Source of the DNA: Octopus bimaculoides | Taxonomy: Eukaryota | Assembly: GCF_001194135.2 (NCBI RefSeq) | Contig: NC_069005.1 | Coordinates: 29,235,004-29,280,569, forward strand | Direction: 5' to 3' | DNA: 45,566 nt | Part shown: piece after piece, positions 22,140-45,566 of the stretch | How positions within the stretch are numbered: the first letter of the stretch is position 1 | Layout: every line of letters begins with the position of its first letter | The notes under the pieces: generated by a model | Seen by the model: only the letters and a program-made list of their open reading frames with translations | Told to the model about the DNA's origin: nothing | Databases searched by the model: none | Translations under genes and position numbers: made by a program

Positions 22140-25100
22140 TGCCTAGGTACTAAAAAAAACAACAACAACAACAATAGTGGTAATTGTTGTTGTTTAGTAG
22201 TAGTAGTAGTAGTAGGAGGAGGAGGAGGAGTCCCTTGATTTTATGTAGCTTTAACATGTTTTTTCTTCTTTTTATTTGTGTGTGTGTGTGTGTTTTTTTA
22301 TTAGTCTGGCCTGTATTGGTTGAACTTAATCGACAATTCCGTGGTTGGATTACCATTAATCATCATCGGNNNNNNNNNNNNNNNNNNNNNNNNNNNNNNN
22401 NNNNNNNNNNNNNNNNNNNNNNNNNNNNNNNNNNNNNNNNNNNNNNNNNNNNNNNNNNNNNNNNNNNNNNNNNNNNNNNNNNNNNNNNNNNNNNNNNNNC
22501 ATCGGTTTCTTTGAGATCATTTCGTTCCAATGGATTTATGGTAAGTGAGAGTTTTTCTTTGTTTTTTTTTCATTTTTCTCATGATTTAACAATTCAATAA
22601 AGCAGAGAAGGAAAATGTGTGAATTGGCGGGGTCAGTAGAGCATTAGATAAAATATTTAGGACACAGGGCAGTATTTGGTACAAATCTCTGCACTGTGAG
22701 TTCAAATCCTACCAAAGTAAACGTCACCTTTCATCTTTTCTGAGAGTTAACAAAAAAAACAAAACAAGTACCAATCAAACCCTAATTGACAGAACAAGTA
22801 CCCTAACCCTAATTGACAGAACTGTAAGAACATTGGATTGTATACCTTGTGGTATTTTTCTGGCTCTTTGCATTCTGAGTTCAAATCCCACCATGGCCTA
22901 TCTGGCTGATAGACTACAATCTATCATCCAGTTTAATACTCCAATCTGGTACCTTGCATGCTCTTAGCGGTGTCCACACTTGCTGCAAGCGTCCAGGTCA
23001 GGTCTTTAATTAGACGATTTCTTTCTCCCCCTCTCTCTCTCTCTCCATCCCTCCCTCCTACCCACCAGTCTTGAAAGACCTGTTACTGGTCATGGGCTAC
23101 GTTCTGAGTTCAAATTCCGCTGAGGTCAACTTTGCCTTTCATCCTTTCAGGGGTCAATAAATTAAGTACCAGTTACACACTGGGGTTTATGTGATCGACT
23201 TAATCCCTTTATCTGTCCTTGTTTGTCCCCTCTATGTTTAGCCCCTTGTGGGCAATAAAGAAATAAGAAACATTAGCACGCCAGGCGAAATGCTTAGCGG
23301 TATTTCATCTGTCCGTTTGTCTGTCCTTGTTTGTCCCCTCTGTGTGTAGCTCCTTGTGGGCAGTAAAGAAATAGGTATTTCATCTGTCTTTACTTCTGAG
23401 TTCAAATTCCGCTGAGGTCGACTTTGCCTTTTATCCTTTTGGGGTCGATACATTGTGTACTGGGGTCAATCTAATTGACTGGCCCCCTCCCCCAAAATGT
23501 TCTACTCTTGTGCCAAGAGTAGAAAAGATTATTATTATTATCATTATTATTTTCTTTTGATTTTTTTTTTTCTTCCTTTATCAGGCAACGTATCAAATGA
23601 CATCACTCTGATGTTAGGGAAAAAAACATTTATGGTCATGAATTTTTGCTGCAAGTTTATCACGCCCATCATTATGTTCGTAAGTCACAACTTTACTTGC
23701 TACAGTGTTGTTGTTGTTGATGATGTTGTTGTTGTTGTTGATGATGTTGTTGTTGTTGTTTATTTATCCAAGGGCCATCTACACAGATTAATTATCTTAC
23801 TTCATTCAATAAAGGATGGCTGACTGATTTTTTTTTTTTAATCACTTTGTTATTCCTGCTGTTTGTTTCTTTAACTGGTCTCAGTCATTGGATAGTGACC
23901 ATGCTGGGGCACCACCTTGAAAGGTTTACTCCAGTGATTCTCAACCATTTTCCTACCTACAGACCCTTTGATCCTTATTTTGCTCCACTGGACCCTCAGA
24001 GCCAAATGATGTTTAAAAAAATCCTATTATATTTTTATGATTAAATATTATTAAGAATTGCATTTTAAAAAAAACTTTAAATATTTTGTGCATTGTAGAA
24101 GTATAACTGATTTATTGCAGATAAATTTTAACAACAAAATCTTATATGAACCCCTAAGGGTCATGTGGACCTTGGTTGAGAACCACTGGGTTAGTCAAAA
24201 TAATTGGCCCCAATACTTGTCTTTAAGTGTAGCATTTATTCTGTTGGTCTCTTCTACCAAACTGCTAAATTATGGGGATATAAGCAAAAGAAGCAGTGGT
24301 GAGGACAAATACATGCACATACACACACACACACATGATGGGCTTCGTCACAGTTGCTCTAGATGCCAGTCAGGGAGACTGAGCTCAGAATTAGCAAAAT
24401 GAAGGCCAGGGCAGGGTCCATCAGTAACCACTTATTATAGCAGAGTCACCATTGACCCTTTCGTCCTTTCAGGGTCAATAAATGAAGTACCAGTGAAACA
24501 CCAGGGGGGGGGGGCATGTAATCAACTTATCCCCTCCCCCCAAAAAATTTCAGGCCTTGTGCCTATTAGCAGAAAGAATTATTTCAATGTCCACTTTCCC
24601 ATGCTTGCATATCTTTTTATCCATCTATCCATTTCTGTCTTTCATTTCAGTTGCTGATATTATTTAAGTTTGTGAAATTCCAGCCAATAAAAATGGGTAG
24701 TTATGAGTACCCCATGTCAGCCCAAGTGATCGGATACCTCTTATCAGCCCTTTGTGTCATATTCATACCAGGATATCTTATATATTACTTACTCAGAAAC
24801 TGCTCGGTTAGTTGGGATTTTTTTTAATGTTTTTTTTTTCCCTTCCTTTGCCTCCAACCCAACCTCTTCCCCTCCCAAATTTTCCCACCCTATTTTCAGC
24901 CTTTACCTTGCCCCCACTCTTGTTTGTTAATCTTCTATAATGTCTCATTAATTTTTTTATTATCATTAGGTGAAAGCATGGCTCTGTAATTGCAAATGAA
25001 ACAATCCTGGGTCTGGGGCTTGGGTTTGATCTTATGATAAACCTACACTGAATGCAAGTAGCTTCTATGCCCTAGTCTCAGTTCAACCAGCCACAACTTT

Positions 25101-26601: not shown

Positions 26602-28205
26602 GCAAAAATAGATATCCTGAAGTCTGCCAGACGTCTCTGGGGNNNNNNNNNNGGGTCATCCACTTGGACAAAAAATATGGAGCGAGGGTTTGGACAAAAA
26701 CATGGAGAGAGGGCTGATTTTATCTTGATATGGTTTAACCTCATTCCATTGCAGTTACAAATTAATTTCATTGAACTTTGTAGGTCCTGCTTGATATTAT
26801 TTAATTCACCACACATACACACACACACACATAATTAAGCTCTTCAACAACTGTTTTGAAAAGGGAATAGAAACTTTCAGGCAGTTTCCCATTTCCAGCC
26901 ATCGAACTTCTGTATGCAACAACAATAATCCAGAATCTTTATCATTCTCGATGTAGAGCTGTAAAAACAAGGGGGAACTGAGGGCATGTGCCTTGATTTT
27001 ATTTTACTGCTCTGATAACGATGTGTTAAGTCTACCACTTACGTTATTTGCAATGTGGGCAAACACACTCGGTTATACCGAGTATCGGTATAACATTTTC
27101 AATAAACCGAGGAAGCAGTGACGACAACCTACCATCTGTGGTATTCTATTCAGCTTAAAAACGAAATATTGACAACATTTTTGTATATGTTTCTTGTTGT
27201 CTTGCTTGAATCAAACATTAATCTTTGACGAAGCAAATGCAAGCAAAAAAACAAACTATCGTTAATTGGCAGAAGACACACGTTTGTGAGCTACATTTGG
27301 TTGTTCTGTGCATGTTGCACAATAAACCTTAAATGTTATAACATTCCACATTTTGAAACACATGTAATATGCATTTTTTACAGAAAAAATTTTGTACTTC
27401 GACCTCTTTGTTGAAGGTAAAAATCCCGGAAAAGCAAAACACAAAAGAAAAATTCCGATTTCTACATGATGGCTTTTTCCAAATTTTATTCTGTAAAAAT
27501 ATAAATTACGTGTTTCAAAATGCAGACGATGAAAAGTAACAAGCGAATAGAAAATAAATATAGTGGTGACGATGAGGGGCTGGGTAGACATTTGAAAAAA
27601 CGAATGGATTAAGAAGTTTTATTTTAAAGAAACTTCGCTCGTGAATAATTTGAAATGTGAGACATTTATGAAATGTGGGACACTTATGGAATGTGGGAAA
27701 ATGCTGAAGAAACCCGAGAAATTCCAGTTTACTTAAGACAGTTATTCTGAAAGTTCAACAAATATAGAATCGAATATCTTCTTTTTAAAAGTTTCGTTAT
27801 GACAGAGTTTCTAAAATATAAATTTGAAAAAATTGTTGAAAGCACCGAAAATCAGAAAATGATGAGCTTCCAACCGATACTCCACTAATTCTGAACAACA
27901 ACAAAAAGCCACTATTATAATAGCTTATTTTAATCAGTCGATTATGTCGCCTGTATTTAAAGCAAATATACGAAGACGTATTCTAAAGTTTGTCTCATAC
28001 TGAAAATTTATAAAATTTATATATTTTTTTATAAAACCAAACTTTACAAAGAACAAAAGTTAAAATAACAATTATGGAAGATATATGAAGAATGTCTTAC
28101 CTTTAACTAAAAAATACAAACTCAAGACAACAGTTGAGCGAAACTTCGAAGTCACAATTGTAAATTATTTGTTTAGTAACAGTAATCTCTCCCCCTCTCT
28201 CTCTT

Positions 28206-28372: not shown

Positions 28373-28406
<34 letters not shown>

Positions 28407-29218
28407 TTCAAAAAAAGGAANNNNNNNNNNNNNNNNNNNNNNNNNNNNNNNNNNNNNNNNNNNNNNNNNNNNNNNNNNNNNNNNNNNNNNNNNNNNNNNN
28501 NNNNNNNNNNNNNNNNNNNNNNNNNNNNNNNNNNNNNNNNNNNNNNNNNNNNNNNNNNNNNNNNNNNNNNNNNNNNNNNNNNNNNNNNNNNNNNNNNNNN
28601 NNNNNNNNNNNNNNNNNNNNNNNNNNNNNNNNNNNNNNNNNNNNNNNNNNNNNNNNNNNNNNNNNNNNNNNNNNNNNNNNNNNNNNNNNNNNNNNNNNNN
28701 NNNNNNNNNNNNNNNNNNNNNNNNNNNNNNNNNNNNNNNNNNNNNNNNNNNNNNNNNNNNNNNNNNNNNNNNNNNNNNNNNNNNNNNNNNNNNNNNNNNN
28801 NNNNNNNNNNNNNNNNNNNNNNNNNNNNNNNNNNNNNNNNNNNNNNNNNNNNNNNNNNNNNNNNNNNNNNNNNNNNNNNNNNNNNNNNNNNNNNNNNNNN
28901 NNNNNNNNNNNNNNNNNNNNNNNNNNNNNNNNNNNNNNNNNNNNNNNNNNNNNNNNNNNNNNNNNNNNNNNNNNNNNNNNNNNNNNNNNNNNNNNNNNNN
29001 NNNNNNNNNNNNNNNNNNNNNNNNNNNNNNNNNNNNNNNNNNNNNNNNNNNNNNNNNNNNNNNNNNNNNNNNNNNNNNNNNNNNNNNNNNNNNNNNNNNN
29101 NNNNNNNNNNNNNNNNNNNNNNNNNNNNNNGTAACACTGAATCCCTGTATTCTAATGCTTTCTATAAATAAATTTGTTAGTTTCAAACAATCTGTGTTTA
29201 GAATTAAATAAGTAAATA

Positions 29219-30544: not shown

Positions 30545-33500
30545 CTGAAAAACATTTAAAAAAACAAATTACATGTAACAACAACAACAACAAAAACCAT
30601 TTAAGCAAAACCAAATTATATATTCAAATATAAATTAGAAGCAGTGCTAGTATTGTAAACACTATGGAACACACATACTTGTAAATCAGCAGGCTGTGAT
30701 TTGGGACATTCAGTTTGACAGTAGGCTCTGATTTAGCATGTCCAGTTTCTCTCTAGTTCGGTTCAGGTAGATGACATTGATAAGCCACAGAAGTGATGAA
30801 ACATCAATGCCCATCACTCCTGGTTGGGATTTGGAGTGTGATGTCTGACCTGTCTATGACTTTCAGGTGTTTTATCATCTGGTGCTTTGAAAGAATCATC
30901 TAGACTGTGCCAAATCACAACCTACTGGTAAACGAACAAAGCACATACATTCAGTACGTGTTAACATAATGTCAATGAATTATATATATCTATGACTACA
31001 TTGCTCAAGCACACAATATGCTACCTGGTCCAGAAATCAAACCCACAATGCAATACCCTAACCACTACATTACATGCCTTTACATTCTACTCATACATAA
31101 GCAAATCACCAACCAAACATCATCAGGCATTCTGATCAGAATCAGTGAAAGGCTGAATGCCACATTCTCTGATGAAGAATACAATAGTAAAGCACTAAAA
31201 CATGGCTAATGGGACCATTTGCTCCAGAGATGCACAAGAGGTTGTGTACTGCTGGGTCATATAACCTCATTTGATTTACAAAAGGTTGTGTGGGCTCATG
31301 GATATTGATGCACCTGTACCAGTGCCATCATCGTTCATCGTTTAACGTCCGCTTTCCATGCTAGCATGGGTTGGACGATTTGACTGAGGACTGGTGAAAC
31401 CAGATGGCTACACCAGGCTCCAATCTGATTTGGCAGAGTTTCTACAGCTGGATTCCCTTCCTAACGCCAACCACTCCGAGAGTGTAGTGGGTGCTTTTAC
31501 ATGCCACCGGCACGAAGGCCAGTCAAGCGGTACTGGCAACGGCCATGCTCAGAATGGTGTATTTTATGTGCCACCTGCACAAGAGCCAGTCCAGGGGCAC
31601 TGGCAACGATCTCGCTCAAATGCATACATTCTGGTGCTGCATAAGCACACCCAATATGCTCTGTAAAGTGGTTGGCATTGGGAAGGGCATTTAGCCATAG
31701 AAACTATGCCAAAATGGATGTGGAGCCTGGGCAGGTCTTGTCAAGCTGTTCAACTCATGCCAGAATGGAAAACGAACATTAAAGATGATGATGATGGTGT
31801 GCATTACAGGGTCATATGACCCAATTTGATTTGATTTACAAAATGCTGTACCTGCATCTGTTGACAAGATTCGATTTGCTTTGCTTTTAAAATCTTCAAA
31901 GATCTTCTCTCGTTTTCTAACCATTCTTCGGCCCTCTTCCGATCTGACCGATATGCTTCTACTTTCATTTCTTTTTGTAACTGACGATTGTTCAACAGTT
32001 CTTCGGTCAAATATTTCACTGGTTTTCCCATGTTTCTTTATGGAAAGAAATAGAAAACAATCCCAAAGTGATTCAAATTCAGGGCTGGAGTAAGGAGTTT
32101 CTTGAGGGAGGAAAGAGAAAACAAAAAATTGGGGAAAAGGGGTTTCAAAGACTTATTGTTTCTATAAATTAATGTGTGTGTGGATATATTGTATTTAACT
32201 TCCTCTTACTTCATAAAGGGAGTTAGGTCAATTCGTGGTACTCTGTCCTTTAGAAAGATGCTCGGGGGTTCAGTTGTCATGGTGCCGCTTTCCAGTACGC
32301 TGTCCAAAAGCTCTTTGTCCACCTCAGTGGGTATCAGGTGAATATTAAGATATCCTTGATGAGCCTGATTGGCCTACAACAAAGACAGAAAGAGAGAGAG
32401 AGAAAAAGAAAGAGCGTCCAGCAAACTGCATTGTAATCAATGAAAATGGGTCCCAGGGAGTGTGCTCTAGAAATCCATATCTTGCTAATGGCTACCACAT
32501 GTAAATTTACTGACCTGAGGTCATTGAGCAAATGCATGTAATGATAATTATAATAATTGTTATAAATTTTGGTACAAGGCTAGTAGTTTTAGGGGAAGGG
32601 TGTTGGTTGCATCAACCCTGATGCTCAACTGGTACTTCTCTTATCGAGCTCAGGAAACATGAAAGGCAAAGTTGATCTCAGCAGAACTGGAACTCAGAAT
32701 ATAAAGGGTCAGAAGAAATACTGGTAAAAATTTTCTCCAATATTCTTTCATTCTTTTACCTGTTTCAGCCATTTGACTGGGACCGTACTAGAGCACCACT
32801 TTAAACCATTAGTGCCCAAATTTTTTTAATTTAATTTATTACCAAAAATCATTTTTTATACAACTTTATCGAATATTAAATATATAAAGACATTTTTATT
32901 ACAATATTTGAAAGACAGTCCAGTCTTGATGACTAACTAAAGATATCTCAGAAAAATACAGGTGTTGCAGATTATCCTTCTGGTCCTAAAAAAAGGACCA
33001 TGGGCGCTAATGAGTTAAGGGGTTTTAGTTGAACAAATCGACCCCCAGGACTTATTTTTAAGTCCTACAACTTGTTCTATTGGTACTCTGCCAGTTACAA
33101 GGACAAGGGTTCTAGTTGATCCGATCAACGGAACAGCCTGCTCGTGAAATTAACTTGCAAGTGGCTGAGCACTCCTCAGACACGTGTACCCTTAACGTAG
33201 TTCTCAGGGAGATTCAGTGTGACACAGAGTGTGACAAGGCTGGCCCATTGAATTACAGGTACAACTCATTTTTGCCAGCTGAGTAAAATGGAGCAGTTAC
33301 TTTTAGCGTTTTGACAGAAAAAAGTCATTCTAAAATTGTTTTTTAACATAAGCGTGCCCAAACAAGTCAAATGCTTACACAGAACAGGTTTTACAGCTAT
33401 ATCATCTGAACTGACTGGGTGAAACTGGGCTTAGCTTCTAGTATATATATATATATATATATTAATAAATCTCAGGGTAGCAAAAAAATTTAGAAATTCT

Positions 33501-40200: not shown

Positions 40201-41112
40201 CGCTTAGCATTTCACCCAGCGTGCTAACGATTCTGCCAGTTTATGGTGACTTTTGCCCTTCTGACAGAACCCCATGGCTAAAACATGTCCAGCCATGGGG
40301 GTAAATACTATCTAATATAGAAAGAGGTGAGGGTTGGTGAGAGGAAGAGCATCCAACTGTAGAAAATTTGCTTCAACAAACCCTGTTGAATGCATGCAAG
40401 CATGGAAAAGGGGCCATGAAGAGGATGATGATGACTGCAAGCCATTTTGACTTCCACTCCGTCTACATTTGGTAAACCATCTTCAATGTTTGAAGAAATA
40501 TTGGTTTCAAATTTTGGCACAAGGCCAGCAATTTCAGAGGAGGGCGTAAGTCGATTACATCAACACCAGTGATAAACTGATACTTATTTTATCAACACCG
40601 AGACAATGGAAGTCAAAGTCAACCTTGACAGAATTTGAACTCAGGATGTCTAAAGACAGACAAAATACTGCTAAGCATTTTGTCCAGCATGCTGACAATT
40701 CTGCCAGGTAATTGCCTGTTTTGAAGAAATATTAACAAAATGAATATCTTACTTACCTGAAAACCACAAACCATGTGTCAGGGGGCTGTTCCCCGTATAC
40801 TCCTTGGTAATCGGTGTAAGATATTTTGTGCCAATCATCTTTGTAGAAGCTGTAGTATGGGATGGTTTGTGGGTTTTTACTTATCAGATTCCTGGATAAA
40901 TGGAGATGATATAATAATGCATAATTACGATTGTCTCTGATTCCTTATAATTATATTATAACATAACATTATGAATAAGCACACACACACATATGCACAC
41001 ACACACACACTCACTCGCATTCACACACACACATATGTATGTACATCTATGGAGATTGTCATGTCAAAATGGTATAAGAGACTTTATATCAATATATATA
41101 TATATGTATGTA

Positions 41113-41205
<93 letters not shown>

Positions 41206-44034
41206 AGGAACTTTATATATTTATTTATTTCAAATGGAACCTTAGCAAACGAGAGTAGAAATGTCTCCATTTTGTGGCTACGTAATTACAGAAAAACCAT
41301 TATATCTGTAGTTAGTCTGAAATATAACTGATGTAATTAAAATAATTACCTGAACACATTAAGACCAATCTCATCGATATGTGGTTTAATTTGAAGCCAA
41401 AACCTTTTCAAAACATCCCATACAAAGATGTTATCAGATGAACCTTTAAGAAGATATTTTAACTCCACTTTAATCTCATTTCAATAACTGATTGCAAAAC
41501 AACATCATATATACAGGTACAACACTGTTCCAGAACCTAATTTTCCCAAACTAGGTGTGGCTATCTTCTTCAACATACTCTAAACTAAAGAAATATTGTC
41601 TTCAAATTTTGGCACAAGGCCAGCAATTTCGGGAGAGGGGTAAGCCGATTACATCAACCCCAGCGCTCAACTGGTACTTCTTTTATCAATCCCAAAAGGA
41701 TGAAAGGCAAATTCAAGCTCAGTGGAATTTGAACTCAGAATGTAAGGCCAGACAGACAAAATGCCACTAAGCATTTTGCCCAGCATGTTAATGATTACAC
41801 CAGCTTACCGTCTTAGATTAAAAAAATATTGATCTCAAATTTTGACACAAGGCCACCAATATTGGGGGTTGGGGTAAGCTGATTACAGCAACCCCAATGC
41901 TCAACTGGTATTTATTTTATCAAGCCTGAAAGCATTATGAAAGGCAAAGTTGGTCTTGGAGGAATATGAACTCAGAATGTAAAACCGGACGAAATGCCAC
42001 TAAGCACCCGTTATGCAGATGATTCTGCCAGCTCATCTCTTTTATATTGGTATAAATTATAAACACCCTTTTCTACTCTAGGCATAAGGCCCGAAATTTT
42101 TTGGGGGAGTGGAGGGGGCAGTCAATTAGATCGACCTCAGTACACAACTGGTACTTAATTTATCGACCTCAAAAGGATGAAAAGCAAGGTCGACTTCAGC
42201 AGAATTCGAACTCAGGAGGTAAAGAAAGACGAAATACTGCTAAGCATTTCGCCCAGCATGCTAACATTTCTTATTTCTTTACTGCCCACAAGGGGCTACA
42301 CACAGAGGGGACAAACAAGGACAGACAAGTCAAGGCAGTGCTGGCATCAGCCACATTCGGATGGTGCTTTTTACGTACCACCGTCTTCTCAAGCACAGCA
42401 GGTCGTCCTACGATCCAAGGTACTTTTGAATGGGCTGGAGCTGGTTATGCAAAACTGGTTTAATTTGGCAAATACGCAATGCAACTGAAGGAATTAACAA
42501 TCATGCAGCACAGCTCTTTCTTACCGTGTATCTGGGATCTTTTTATTTTCCGAACATACGCCCCGCGCCAAAAACTCTGTATCTTTACTGCAGCGATTTG
42601 AAAGTCAATGTTGTTTTCCCTGTGAATTGTTTAAAAAGGATATCACAAATAAATTGATGAACAAACAAACAAACAAACAAACAAACAAACAAATAAATGG
42701 TTGTGTGGTTAAGAAGCTCACTTTGCCTCCACACAATTCTGGGTTCAGTCCCACTTTGCAGCACCTTGGGCAAGTGTCTTCTATTATAACCTCATACATA
42801 TGTATATGTGTTTGTGTGTGTGTGTGTGCATGTGCATGTACACACATATATGTATGTTTATGTGTTTGTGTGTGTGTATGTATGTATGTATGTATGTATG
42901 TATGTATGCATGTATGTATGTATGTATGTAAAGCTGTGTGGTTAAGAATTTTGCTTCCCAACCACATAGTTCCAGGTTCAGTCCCACAACATGGCTCCTT
43001 GTGCAAGGGTCTTTAAAGGTATTGTGAAAGGCCTGGTTGGAGGCCCAACCTTCCAGGTCCTTTTACAGGGTTTAGAAAAATTGACAACCTACTGCAAGAA
43101 GCATGTGAACCTCAATAAAATCCTAATTAACTGATCCTCCTGTATTTTCTTTTATCTAAAGCCAGGAACTTTTCTGCACACCTTTTGTGTGTGTGTGTCT
43201 GTATGTGTATGCGTGCATGCGTGTGTGTGTCATTATTCAGTTTATTTCAATATAGAGTTAACGAGGTACCAATTAGACATAATCTAAAAGAATCAAAAGA
43301 GAAACTCACATCTGCGGGAAAGGGTCATGCTTCTCTGTTTCTGCAGTAAAAGTACAAAGAAAAGGTCCATAAATTTAGGGATAAAAAAAAGGGGGGGGGG
43401 GGGGTAAAGACTTGTTTCAGTCACGAATGACCATGGGATTGCACCTAGAAAGTTCCCCTCCGAGGCACAGGTCTGAGCAATGTTATTTATGGAAGACCAG
43501 CAGTCGTCCATGCATACCAGCCTCCCTTTTCTATTCCACCGATGTTATTCAAAGGAAAGGCAAAGGGGCTGATACAGCTTGGCACCAGTGACATTGCAAC
43601 TCATTTCTATAGATGAGTGAACTGGAGCAATGTGCTCAAGAACACAACACACAGCCTGGTCCTGGAATCGAATTCACAACTTCATGATTGCAAGCCCAAC
43701 ACCCTAACCGCTGAACTATGCACCTTCACATAGCTATGCACCTTCACATAGCTATATGCCTTCACATATTTATGTGCCTTCACATAGCTATGCACCTTCA
43801 CATAACTATAATGACAGATAATCAGATAGATAGATGATACTTACTTAATTTGTTTGCTTGTTGAAGCGGAGCTGGAGTGTATTTCCAGTTCAGTTCAAAG
43901 AAGAATGCCCTCCATGCAAACAGAGTTTCGGTGTTGAAGGGGACTGTTTTAGAAAGGAGCCGGAGTAAAGACTCTTTAAAATTCTACAATGAGACAAAAC
44001 AAAACCTCAGAATAAATGTGTGCGCATGTGTGTG

Positions 44035-44066
<32 letters not shown>

Positions 44067-45138
44067 AGCACAGACATGCATACATACATATATATAATCA
44101 AGGCATCATAAAAGGGAATGGAGAATTAAACGCATCTTTAAAACTTGTTTATTACAGTATTATTCTCATTAAATTCACATTAGATTCCAATCTGCTGCAT
44201 AAGTGTCCTATTGTAGCATTTATGTGCATGACACATGGAGATCTTTTGCAATTGACCTCATGGACTTTCTGGGATTGTAATCAAAGGTCTGTTGAACTTG
44301 TTAGATAAATCCAGGTGTTCTGGTGATTTCAGAGTGTTTAGAATGCTTTTTCTGCTTTGATACCGGTGATACGTTTCCATCTTCAGTCTCTAGCTCCTTA
44401 CAAACTTTGTAGATGAAAGATCTGGCAACTTTTAAAAATTGAGATATTTCTAAATCGCTATGCTCAGCAATTATATAACCACAACAACAGCATGCCTCTT
44501 CATTTCTTGAGTAAGCTGAGGGTCTGCTGTTATTATTTTCTGAAACAATGATTATACAGTTAGCAAAAAATGTAGCAGTGGCCCCAAAAAAGGTATGTCT
44601 TCAAATGCCTTATGCACCCTGCATATAATGCAACAAACAAACAAAAAAAACACGTGACTTGGTATTTTTGTATATTATGTTCCTAGAAAAAACACCTTTA
44701 GTGATAGAATAAAAACAATATGTCCAGTTTATGTCCCCAAAATCTGATATTGTTAATGAAGGGCCTCCCTTATATCTCTCTCCCTCATCCCACTTTCTCT
44801 GTAGAATGGTAACAACTCGGCATGGTCCACCAAATTCAGATACTTAAAAGGGAGATTTGGCTATTATTTCCAGCTAGCCACGTAACTAAATATCGACTCC
44901 CTAAGTGGTTTCTGTGCTCCCTAGTGTAAGGTCAAAATGCTCAGTGTGAATAAGACGGGTTTTCCTTTACCTCATACTGCTGTCCCTTTGAATAAGCTGT
45001 TGCTGGTGCTGTGGGATATAGGTAAACTTTCAGGTTCTCCTTTGCTTGTCTATATTTTTCCTTGGAATGGAAATTCGCGACACAATTTTCAAAGCAGAGC
45101 ATCATTTGTGAAGCAGATTCTATGAAATGACTGCTTTC
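30365..45138 (-). CDS. ADGB: Androglobin, 3' portion (globin C-H/IQ/A-B through C-terminus), 15 exons, 697 aa; 5' exons outside window
   Basis: Exons 45138-44971, 43983-43845, 43340-43310, 42619-42525, 41443-41350, 40891-40757, 40144-39991, 38954-38764, 37696-37494, 36487-36444, 35578-35467, 34359-34160, 32373-32210, 32035-31852, 30544-30365 join in one stop-free frame. ADGB-typical blocks: [69 protein letters not shown], Lys-rich tail. Confidence 0.93.
30687..30927. mobile_element. Small inverted-repeat-bounded element
   Basis: ~26-bp imperfect TIR CAG(C/T)AGG(C/T)TGTGATTTGG; TSD unclear (GTAAAT/GTAAAC). Confidence 0.45.
31852..32035 (-). CDS. ADGB: ADGB exon (coiled coil)
   Basis: [61 protein letters not shown]. 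Confidence 0.9.
32210..32373 (-). CDS. ADGB: ADGB exon
   Basis: [55 protein letters not shown]; phase 0-2. Confidence 0.87.
32420..32540 (-). mobile_element. Possible LINE AP-endonuclease N-terminal fragment
   Basis: [20 protein letters not shown] resembles the APE DL....DV.A..ET motif. Confidence 0.35.
32805..33014. mobile_element. piggyBac-like MITE nested in a family A SINE
   Basis: TTAA at 32801-32804 and 33015-33018; TIR (AC/CT)CATTAG(T/C)GCCCA; SINE sequence is continuous across the insertion. Confidence 0.7.
33573..33883. mobile_element. Tc1/mariner-like MITE with ~80-bp inverted arms
   Basis: 33566-33645 is the reverse complement of 33811-33890 with about 6 mismatches; CAG...CTG ends with TA/TG flanks. 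Confidence 0.8.
34160..34359 (-). CDS. ADGB: ADGB exon
   Basis: [16 protein letters not shown]...[19 protein letters not shown]; phase 1-0. Confidence 0.9.
34403..34730 (+). mobile_element. R4/Dong-like (RLE) LINE 3' fragment
   Basis: [23 protein letters not shown]...VVIGALG...[15 protein letters not shown]; (AAT)n on both sides. Confidence 0.85.
35467..35578 (-). CDS. ADGB: ADGB exon
   Basis: [37 protein letters not shown]. Confidence 0.92.
35839..36058. mobile_element. piggyBac-like MITE
   Basis: TTAA TSD, TIR CCCTTTAG(T/C)GTT(T/C)AAA; partial inverted copy at about 38527-38675. Confidence 0.8.
36444..36487 (-). CDS. ADGB: ADGB 44-nt small exon
   Basis: (S)[14 protein letters not shown]; strong splice sites; supplies the required phase 1-0 bridge. 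Confidence 0.75.
37494..37696 (-). CDS. ADGB: ADGB exon
   Basis: [67 protein letters not shown]. Confidence 0.92.
37750..38322. repeat. Complex minisatellite with higher-order structure
   Basis: GTAGATGTAAGGATTAA subunits and a recurring CAGAAAGTTGGTGTATGGATT block (4 copies). Confidence 0.85.
38764..38954 (-). CDS. ADGB: ADGB exon
   Basis: [63 protein letters not shown]. Confidence 0.93.
39991..40144 (-). CDS. ADGB: ADGB exon
   Basis: [51 protein letters not shown]. Confidence 0.93.
40757..40891 (-). CDS. ADGB: ADGB exon
   Basis: [45 protein letters not shown]. Confidence 0.93.
41350..41443 (-). CDS. ADGB: ADGB exon: permuted globin helices A-B
   Basis: [32 protein letters not shown]; phase 1-2. 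Confidence 0.88.
41598..42335 (-). mobile_element. Cluster of 3 or more co-oriented family B SINE copies
   Basis: CACAAGGCC...CAACTGGTA...GAAAGGCAAA...GAACTCAGAA repeated at about 41598, 41834 and 42070. Confidence 0.8.
42525..42619 (-). CDS. ADGB: ADGB exon: IQ calmodulin-binding motif
   Basis: [31 protein letters not shown](G). Confidence 0.93.
43310..43340 (-). CDS. ADGB: ADGB 31-nt micro-exon
   Basis: (K)TEKHDPFPQ(M); strong acceptor and GTGAGT donor; supplies the required phase 1-2 bridge. Confidence 0.75.
43845..43983 (-). CDS. ADGB: ADGB exon: globin helices G-H
   Basis: [46 protein letters not shown]; phase 0-1. Confidence 0.85.
44190..44621 (-). mobile_element. Tc1/mariner-superfamily transposase N-terminal (HTH) remnant
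   Basis: [50 protein letters not shown]...[16 protein letters not shown] with stops; CAGGGTGCATAAG terminus. Confidence 0.8.
44971..45138 (-). CDS. ADGB: ADGB exon: globin helices E-F
   Basis: [56 protein letters not shown]; 168 nt, phase 0-0. Confidence 0.88.
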
Positions 45139-45566
45139 CTGAAATAAAAATTTTTAAAAAAAATTAAACAAAATTAAACAAAAATTGGAATTGCTTACAG
45201 ATTGGCTGTTAGGTGAAAACTTAGGAGAAGTATGGGTATAATTCTGTAATTGAGGGTCGGGTTGCATAGGAAAGATATTCAATTGAAGATCTGTATCACT
45301 ATCCATTGATCTTACAGCATTAAAAAATGATGCAAAGCATTATAGAACAAAATACGTTAAGAGGCATATGCACATGTATGTACACATGCACACACACACA
45401 CACATATACATACATACATTCTTTTATTCTTTCACCTACCTTGACTGCAGCCATGCTGGAGCACTACTTTGAAGGGCTCAAGTTGAACAGATTGATCCTA
45501 GGACTTATTTCTTAAGCCTAGTACTTATTCTCTTTTGCCAAACTGATATATATGTATATATATATA

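Follow-up and report, generated by a model that had tools for sequence, protein, structure and literature searches.

The stretch of Octopus bimaculoides DNA analyzed here, 45,566 nucleotides of contig NC_069005.1 (assembly GCF_001194135.2, positions 29,235,004 to 29,280,569; the window, in whose numbering all positions below are given), carries on its minus strand part of a gene whose Octopus bimaculoides product NCBI names androglobin, a large protein known from cilia and sperm tails. Two RefSeq models represent it, XP_052832610 (566 residues; P0009, used here for residue numbering) and the older XP_014773766 (732 residues; P0029). The octopus protein matches the Pfam families Androglobin_IV (PF22069) at 149.8 bits and Androglobin_V (PF22070) at 73.3 bits, with a cut-off of 27 bits, and it also matches FAP42_B2. 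Joints and loose ends of RNA contigs order the exons of the globin module as helices E and F, helices G and H, a micro-exon, the IQ motif, helices A and B, and helix C. This is a circularly permuted globin, with helices E-H followed by an IQ motif and then helices A-C, and it matches the androglobins of bird, turtle, and frog column by column. The gene is transcribed, its RNA is spliced as expected, and its globin module lacks both of the residues that face the heme iron.

Serine and leucine at the two iron-facing positions

The exon for helices E and F occupies 45138-44971 (minus strand), encodes P0009 residues 37-92, and lies between an AG acceptor at 45140-45139 and a GTAAAG donor; the sequence, RNA contigs, and a 27-sequence alignment all place it there. 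Within it, the distal position E7 is Ser44 (exon residue 8; TCT, 45115-45117), and the proximal position F8 is Leu76 (exon residue 40; CTA, 45019-45021), 32 residues further on. Both assignments draw on the sequence, RNA, the alignment, and a shift test, and that of F8 also on a structure prediction. Across 44971-45136, the RNA contigs of four runs (three studies) show 0 differing letters, and they end exactly at the donor; one of them has 5312 nt at depth 101. The Ser and Leu codons are therefore real in both RNA and assembly. One read of the raw-read run X24 falls on the exon; reads of a second species (X21) and the DNA runs X16 and X20 gave no coverage of it. A single base-call error would be insufficient to make CTA a His codon. 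Coleoid cephalopods practice extensive A-to-I RNA editing, and this cannot restore Gln or His at these positions either, because UCU has no A and CUA can be edited only to a synonymous codon.

The two positions were assigned by comparison with orthologues. A profile search retrieved androglobins of bird, turtle, and frog and one further sequence, all spanning the globin module, and a MAFFT alignment of 27 androglobin sequences (A3) contains 14 that span the E-F region. Against all 14, the octopus segment aligns with no gaps from the ES motif to the Pro after F9, as with its bird partner ESYRFIGQATAILKAVGNVINNFSSKPELSKALKELELTHCP. The F8 column holds His in every one of the 14 androglobins and Leu in octopus, and the E7 column holds Gln in 13 of the 14, Lys in the frog Ascaphus, and Ser in octopus. 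The octopus module thus has neither the proximal His F8 nor the distal His or Gln E7 of a heme-binding globin (PF00042). The comparison with human androglobin was made through published residue numbers, which place the start of the domain at Glu785, a disulfide at Cys787-Cys978, the distal Gln at 792, and the proximal His at 824 (PMC11077535); the aligned orthologues are the 14 retrieved sequences. In human androglobin, heme is held through His824, with Gln792 on the distal side and the Cys787-Cys978 disulfide, whereas at His824, Gln792, Cys787, and Cys978 the octopus has Leu, Ser, Ser (Ser39), and Phe (Phe227), so that neither disulfide position is Cys.

The register of this alignment was checked by shifting the octopus sequence against the 14 others and scoring with BLOSUM62. 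For helix E, the score is 39.3 at shift 0 and no more than -1.1 at all other shifts; for the core of helix F, it is 9.4 at shift 0 and 4.1 at the runner-up. This smaller margin for helix F is the one point in favor of an artefact, be it an alignment error concealing the F8 His, a mistake in sequencing, or a ligand restored by RNA editing. However, P0009 residues 61-141, which span helices F, G, and H entirely, contain no His, so no register shift can rescue F8 and the loss of the ligand does not depend on the F register. The His of the NFHSK motif (His60) lies in the EF corner, 16 residues ahead of F8. With RNA contigs of four runs and three studies identical to the window, and with editing unable to yield His from CUA or to act on UCU, which lacks an A, an artefact of any of these kinds is extremely improbable.

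Much of this had been anticipated by the initial annotation, whose minus-strand reading of the exon translation, of the TCT and CTA positions, and of the 32-residue spacing agrees with ours. Its naming of the gene as androglobin and of the exon as helices E and F of the permuted globin is borne out by the NCBI name, Pfam, and the alignment, and its placement of Ser at E7 and Leu at F8 by the ungapped match to 14 orthologues and the shift test. The human string that it quoted is consistent with the published Glu785, Cys787, Gln792, and His824. It had judged a base-call error unlikely and suggested confirming the codons in RNA, and the RNA contigs of four runs carry identical Ser and Leu codons with 0 differences; the other candidate that it had named for F8, the His of NFHSK, is excluded by its position in the EF corner, 16 residues before F8, and by helices F-H having no His.

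It might be argued that the genome holds, outside the 45.6 kb examined, another androglobin gene or an E-F exon of the canonical, heme-binding form. However, tblastn with the E-F segments of bird, frog, and a rotifer-like androglobin found no exon in the window but this one, which rules out an alternative E-F exon inside it, every RNA contig carries the Ser/Leu exon, and a published globin survey contains no canonical octopus Adgb (PMC8136487). We consider such a copy very improbable.

Other sequences show variation at the same two columns. The Ascaphus truei protein (P0021, an NCBI hypothetical protein) has Lys at E7 (ESYSFMEKAT), keeps His at F8, and has no Pfam Globin match. A Logan contig (L001, positions 726-938; SRR28110207_1019192) carries an E-F exon, DSCRFVDQ...ELLYANMSP, from an AT-rich metazoan with small introns, possibly (as a guess) a rotifer; this rotifer-like exon keeps Gln at E7 and the Cys, and has Met in the F8 column with no His close by. 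Contigs nearly identical to it also occur in a wastewater metagenome, where they do not extend to the E-F exon. Going by the Met at F8 in the rotifer-like sequence, invertebrate androglobins may have lost the proximal His repeatedly.

Searched by itself, the 56-residue octopus exon returned no homologue from a word-index search, and an exhaustive phmmer search over 1.84 billion representatives returned only the octopus sequence itself and one further protein, with no other cephalopod or mollusc sequence. This only non-self match (P0010, 307 residues, from NCBI/ENA, on an 81-kb contig; E=7.8e-7) repeats a unit of about 52 residues in tandem about 4.5 times; the unit ends in ...FRHFVQSLHRYIYPSSPSP, similar to the octopus F-helix segment.

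The exon chain and the retained globin scaffold

All other exons of the gene in the window also lie on the minus strand, and the open reading frame runs through every one of them. Helices G and H are encoded at 43845-43983, supported by a piece of an RNA contig and by loose ends and aligning to the vertebrate motif FAFRSFTLDF. A 31-nt micro-exon between helix H and the IQ motif lies at 43310-43340, where a 30-nt loose end of an RNA contig agrees with P0009. The IQ exon is at 42525-42619 (RNA joint 41441/42523, cut +2), with the calmodulin-binding IQ motif at about 42597-42547. Helices A and B are encoded at 41350-41443, with Trp196 at 41399-41397, on the evidence of an RNA contig piece and a match to hemoglobin alpha. 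The end of helix B, helix C, and the CD corner, with the CD1 residue Tyr225 at 40854-40852, are encoded at 40757-40891, a placement given by splice phases and the alignment to hemoglobin alpha PQTKTYFSHWKD. The IQ exon joined directly to an upstream-extended form of an exon (D; GIRDNRNY...) was tried as an alternative and is ruled out by RNA showing the A/B exon at 41443-41350. At window position 43947, RNA run X6 has A against the plus-strand T of the assembly, changing Thr105 of P0009 (ACA) to Ser (TCA), a polymorphism in helix G, and there are also single-letter RNA differences in 41349-41441 and 31847-32035.

Domains IV and V follow in downstream exons between 33493 and 40144, located by exact peptide mapping of P0009 and by Pfam, at approximately 40144-39991, 38954-38766, 37695-37495, 36485-36444, 35578-35468, 34357-34160, and 33516-33493, the last of these being doubtful. 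Two further exons (32373-32210 and 32035-31847, minus strand) are missing from both RefSeq models and are contained in the 5312-nt RNA contig (contig positions 4696-5048, joint 32035/32210); past 31847, the androglobin mRNA runs on into an open reading frame near 30560 (about 30560-30370, minus strand). Because the RNA contig continues through these unannotated exons, the annotated stop (TTGGKKNF, 33516-33493) is probably wrong and the C-terminus longer. At the other end, the first 36 residues of XP_052832610 (MDSDTDLQ...SPNSQS) are encoded at 45199-45306 (minus strand), but none of the four runs, each with contigs on the following exon, has a contig on 45187-45335, so that this RefSeq first exon appears to be an artefact of annotation. 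The 5312-nt contig reaches 3035 nt upstream of the E/F exon, beyond the end of the window, and the real upstream exon therefore lies there; the older model bears a domain-II-like start, KKTWVDFELFCKSF. Both RefSeq models of octopus androglobin are incomplete.

What these exons encode is still in many respects a globin. Trp196 of helix A, Tyr at CD1, Leu at F4, FAWRAFFF in helix H, and the IQ motif are all retained. Three features that the initial annotation had described as intact, namely the Trp of helix A (41399-41397), the IQ motif, and the splice phases, are confirmed by RNA-supported exons. The A-helix Trp is invariant in an alignment of 6 sequences (A1), and in the 27-sequence alignment one sequence (P0024) has Leu. 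Helices A-C match residues 8-48 of fish hemoglobin alpha (E=0.0011), and all seven PDB matches (7/7) are globins. Tyr225 sits on Phe CD1 of the fish hemoglobin, giving the octopus an aromatic CD1, and also aligns with the Phe of a bird F-P-C motif. In human androglobin, CD1 has been reassigned to Tyr976 (PMC11077535), and we infer from the published numbering that the bird motif corresponds to human Tyr976-Pro-Cys978. The IQ motif stands between the two globin halves and conforms to IQxxxRGxxxR; it scores 15.3 bits against the Pfam IQ profile and that of the bird control 13.3 bits, both under the 20.3-bit cut-off.

The Pfam Globin profile separates the octopus from its orthologues. With a gathering threshold of 22 bits, and with the two halves tested in native order and rearranged to A-H order as had been done for insects (PMC7457136), the scores are 28 and 33 bits for the bird module and 22.2 and 26.4 bits for the rotifer-like one, while the octopus module has no match in either order. 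In overall divergence from other phyla, the octopus sequence is ordinary. For E-F, octopus and bird are 31% identical, and so are bird and the rotifer-like sequence; identities are 25-32% in G-H, 26-39% in A-C, and 54-58% in domain IV. In this small sample, the identities suggest a fold that has been maintained while its ligands were specifically lost, rather than wholesale decay.

Structure prediction with AlphaFold2, run on P0009 with the 27-sequence alignment, gave a model with a mean predicted local distance difference test (pLDDT) score of 64 and values of 82-95 in helices E and F; helix E is predicted at residues 39-57 and helix F at 62-76, the latter ending on Leu76. A separate model of the domain only (pLDDT 76, predicted template modeling score 0.70) has the same helices. 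In the AlphaFold2 model reported for human androglobin, helix F collapses into the heme space (PMC11077535). With the full octopus model as query, Foldseek finds C1 chains of the Chlamydomonas central pair (7n6g_6M and 7sqc_1A-D; E 2e-5 to 3.5e-4).

The expression and conservation of the gene bear on whether it is simply decaying, with ligand loss as a part of pseudogenization. A published survey does list Adgb as "lost in the octopus" (PMC8136487), and both RefSeq models are fragmentary. However, the gene yields contigs in 4 runs, among them a spliced one of 5.3 kb at depth 101, its frame is open across all exons in the window, and domain IV is 54-58% identical to the bird and rotifer-like sequences, with the Androglobin_IV match at 149.8 bits. 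Pseudogenization is largely refuted by these observations, and we regard it as extremely improbable.

A module without heme ligands among known androglobins

The best reading of the octopus module is that it is probably heme-free and structurally maintained. Taking all the evidence together, it is likely that the ligand-less module has been kept as a structural, calmodulin-docking part of an axonemal scaffold. The octopus module would no longer coordinate heme in the canonical way and would persist as a structural part of a large protein of the central apparatus (in the C1b projection, FAP42-like), where it would dock calmodulin; the conserved job of that ciliary or flagellar protein may need no heme. 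A core role independent of heme is suggested because in Tetrahymena, Adgb is one of the C1b subunits of the central apparatus (PMC8175508), because Pfam and Foldseek link the octopus protein to FAP42 and the central pair, and because hexapod androglobins have lost the same ligands.

Several points weigh against a heme-free structural module. The domain-only model finds no globin by Foldseek and nothing under E=1, in a search that is bound to chain order with a domain that is permuted and carries an IQ insert. The calpain-like N-terminal part of the protein falls outside the window. Selection on the module is judged from cross-phylum identity only. Finally, Leu76 has a Tyr on both sides (VYLYP), and Tyr can ligate heme iron in other proteins.

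An alternative raised by this last point is that heme, or some other tetrapyrrole, is still bound by the module through a non-His axial ligand, which could be Tyr75, Tyr77, or His60 of the EF corner. The hydrophobic scaffold, the CD1 Tyr, and Leu F4 are all kept, VYLYP places Tyr at both F7 and F9, and the rotifer-like androglobin, with Met at F8 and Gln at E7, hints at tolerance of a residue other than His at that position. However, Tyr F9 is also found in frog beside a normal His F8 and is therefore no replacement ligand, His60 lies 16 residues ahead of F8 in the EF corner, the distal Gln is gone too, and the octopus has no Pfam Globin score where the controls pass. We consider non-His ligation unlikely. 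Its more specific form, in which Tyr75 or Tyr77 next to F8 holds heme or some other hydrophobic cofactor, seems quite unlikely; if true, this would be an animal globin naturally ligated by Tyr and free of His, whose redox or NO chemistry in the sperm flagellum would be altered.

A structural role without heme would not make the octopus protein unique. All hexapods examined have androglobins without E7 and F8 and with a degenerate globin domain (PMC7457136; Prothmann et al., 2020, and Hoogewijs et al., 2012, as cited there). Like these, the octopus protein keeps the chimeric architecture, is missing both the E7 Gln or His and the F8 His, and has a domain that is unrecognized as a globin even when rearranged, and it is thus a degenerate-globin androglobin of the hexapod type. 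It differs in belonging to a cephalopod mollusc, in the significant match of helices A-C to hemoglobin alpha, and in its CD1 Tyr, A-helix Trp, and intact IQ motif, the hexapod type being compared here by its published description. The octopus loss is presumably independent of that in hexapods. The initial annotation had therefore overstated the novelty of the finding: ligand-less androglobin is known already from hexapods, and the octopus case adds a new phylum. In the literature library searched, we found no paper linking androglobin ligand loss to cephalopods.

With vertebrate androglobin, including the human protein (Reeder et al., 2024; PMC11077535), the octopus protein has in common the order E-H, IQ, A-C, the 32-residue spacing of E7 and F8, the CD1 Tyr, Leu F4, the ES..F..E and NF motifs, and the Pro after F9. 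With Tetrahymena Adgb and Chlamydomonas FAP42 (C1b; PMC8175508; PDB 7n6g and 7sqc), it shares the Pfam families FAP42_B2 and Androglobin_IV/V, and its AlphaFold2 model matches best to central-pair C1 chains; as in those proteins, its function may be independent of a recognizable globin. Unlike them, it still has an IQ motif and a helical module that clearly derives from a globin. Globin folds without canonical heme ligands also occur in the RsbR N-domain, phycobiliproteins, and photoglobin (PMC8717448); these are separate, ancient, and mostly prokaryotic families, whereas the octopus shows a presumably recent loss inside an otherwise heme-binding group of orthologues.

The role of heme in androglobin is debated, the options being O2 or NO chemistry and a role in cilia and sperm flagella that is structural only. 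In octopus, as a second and independent animal lineage, the gene is retained and expressed and the helical module conserved, yet both iron-facing residues are gone, which argues that the core function is heme-independent; octopus androglobin also offers a natural "heme-ligand knockout" for comparison with vertebrates. Most molluscs use hemocyanin. The initial annotation had tied the loss of the ligands to this, a connection that finds no support, since androglobin is no respiratory O2 carrier and a survey of mollusc globins reports Adgb as present in the nine molluscs assayed other than the octopus, in which it is given as lost (PMC8136487). That entry is contradicted at the gene level by the expressed, NCBI-annotated androglobin of O. 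bimaculoides, which the survey presumably missed because the globin domain is unrecognizable.

Repeats and gaps in the window

The intron between the IQ exon and the A/B exon contains, at 41580-42330, three tandem copies of an element resembling a short interspersed nuclear element, spaced about 235-240 bp apart and 72-83% alike. RNA contigs over these copies reach depths of thousands to tens of thousands and show many chimeric joints; they represent a transcribed repeat family of very high abundance. In Rfam, neither this element nor any other part of the window has a match. Runs of N (1912 in total) mark assembly gaps at about 28400-29150, 22370-22500, and 26640-26650, and microsatellites rich in TG, TA, and CA are common, as at 45340-45400, 41067-41285, and 42700-43000.

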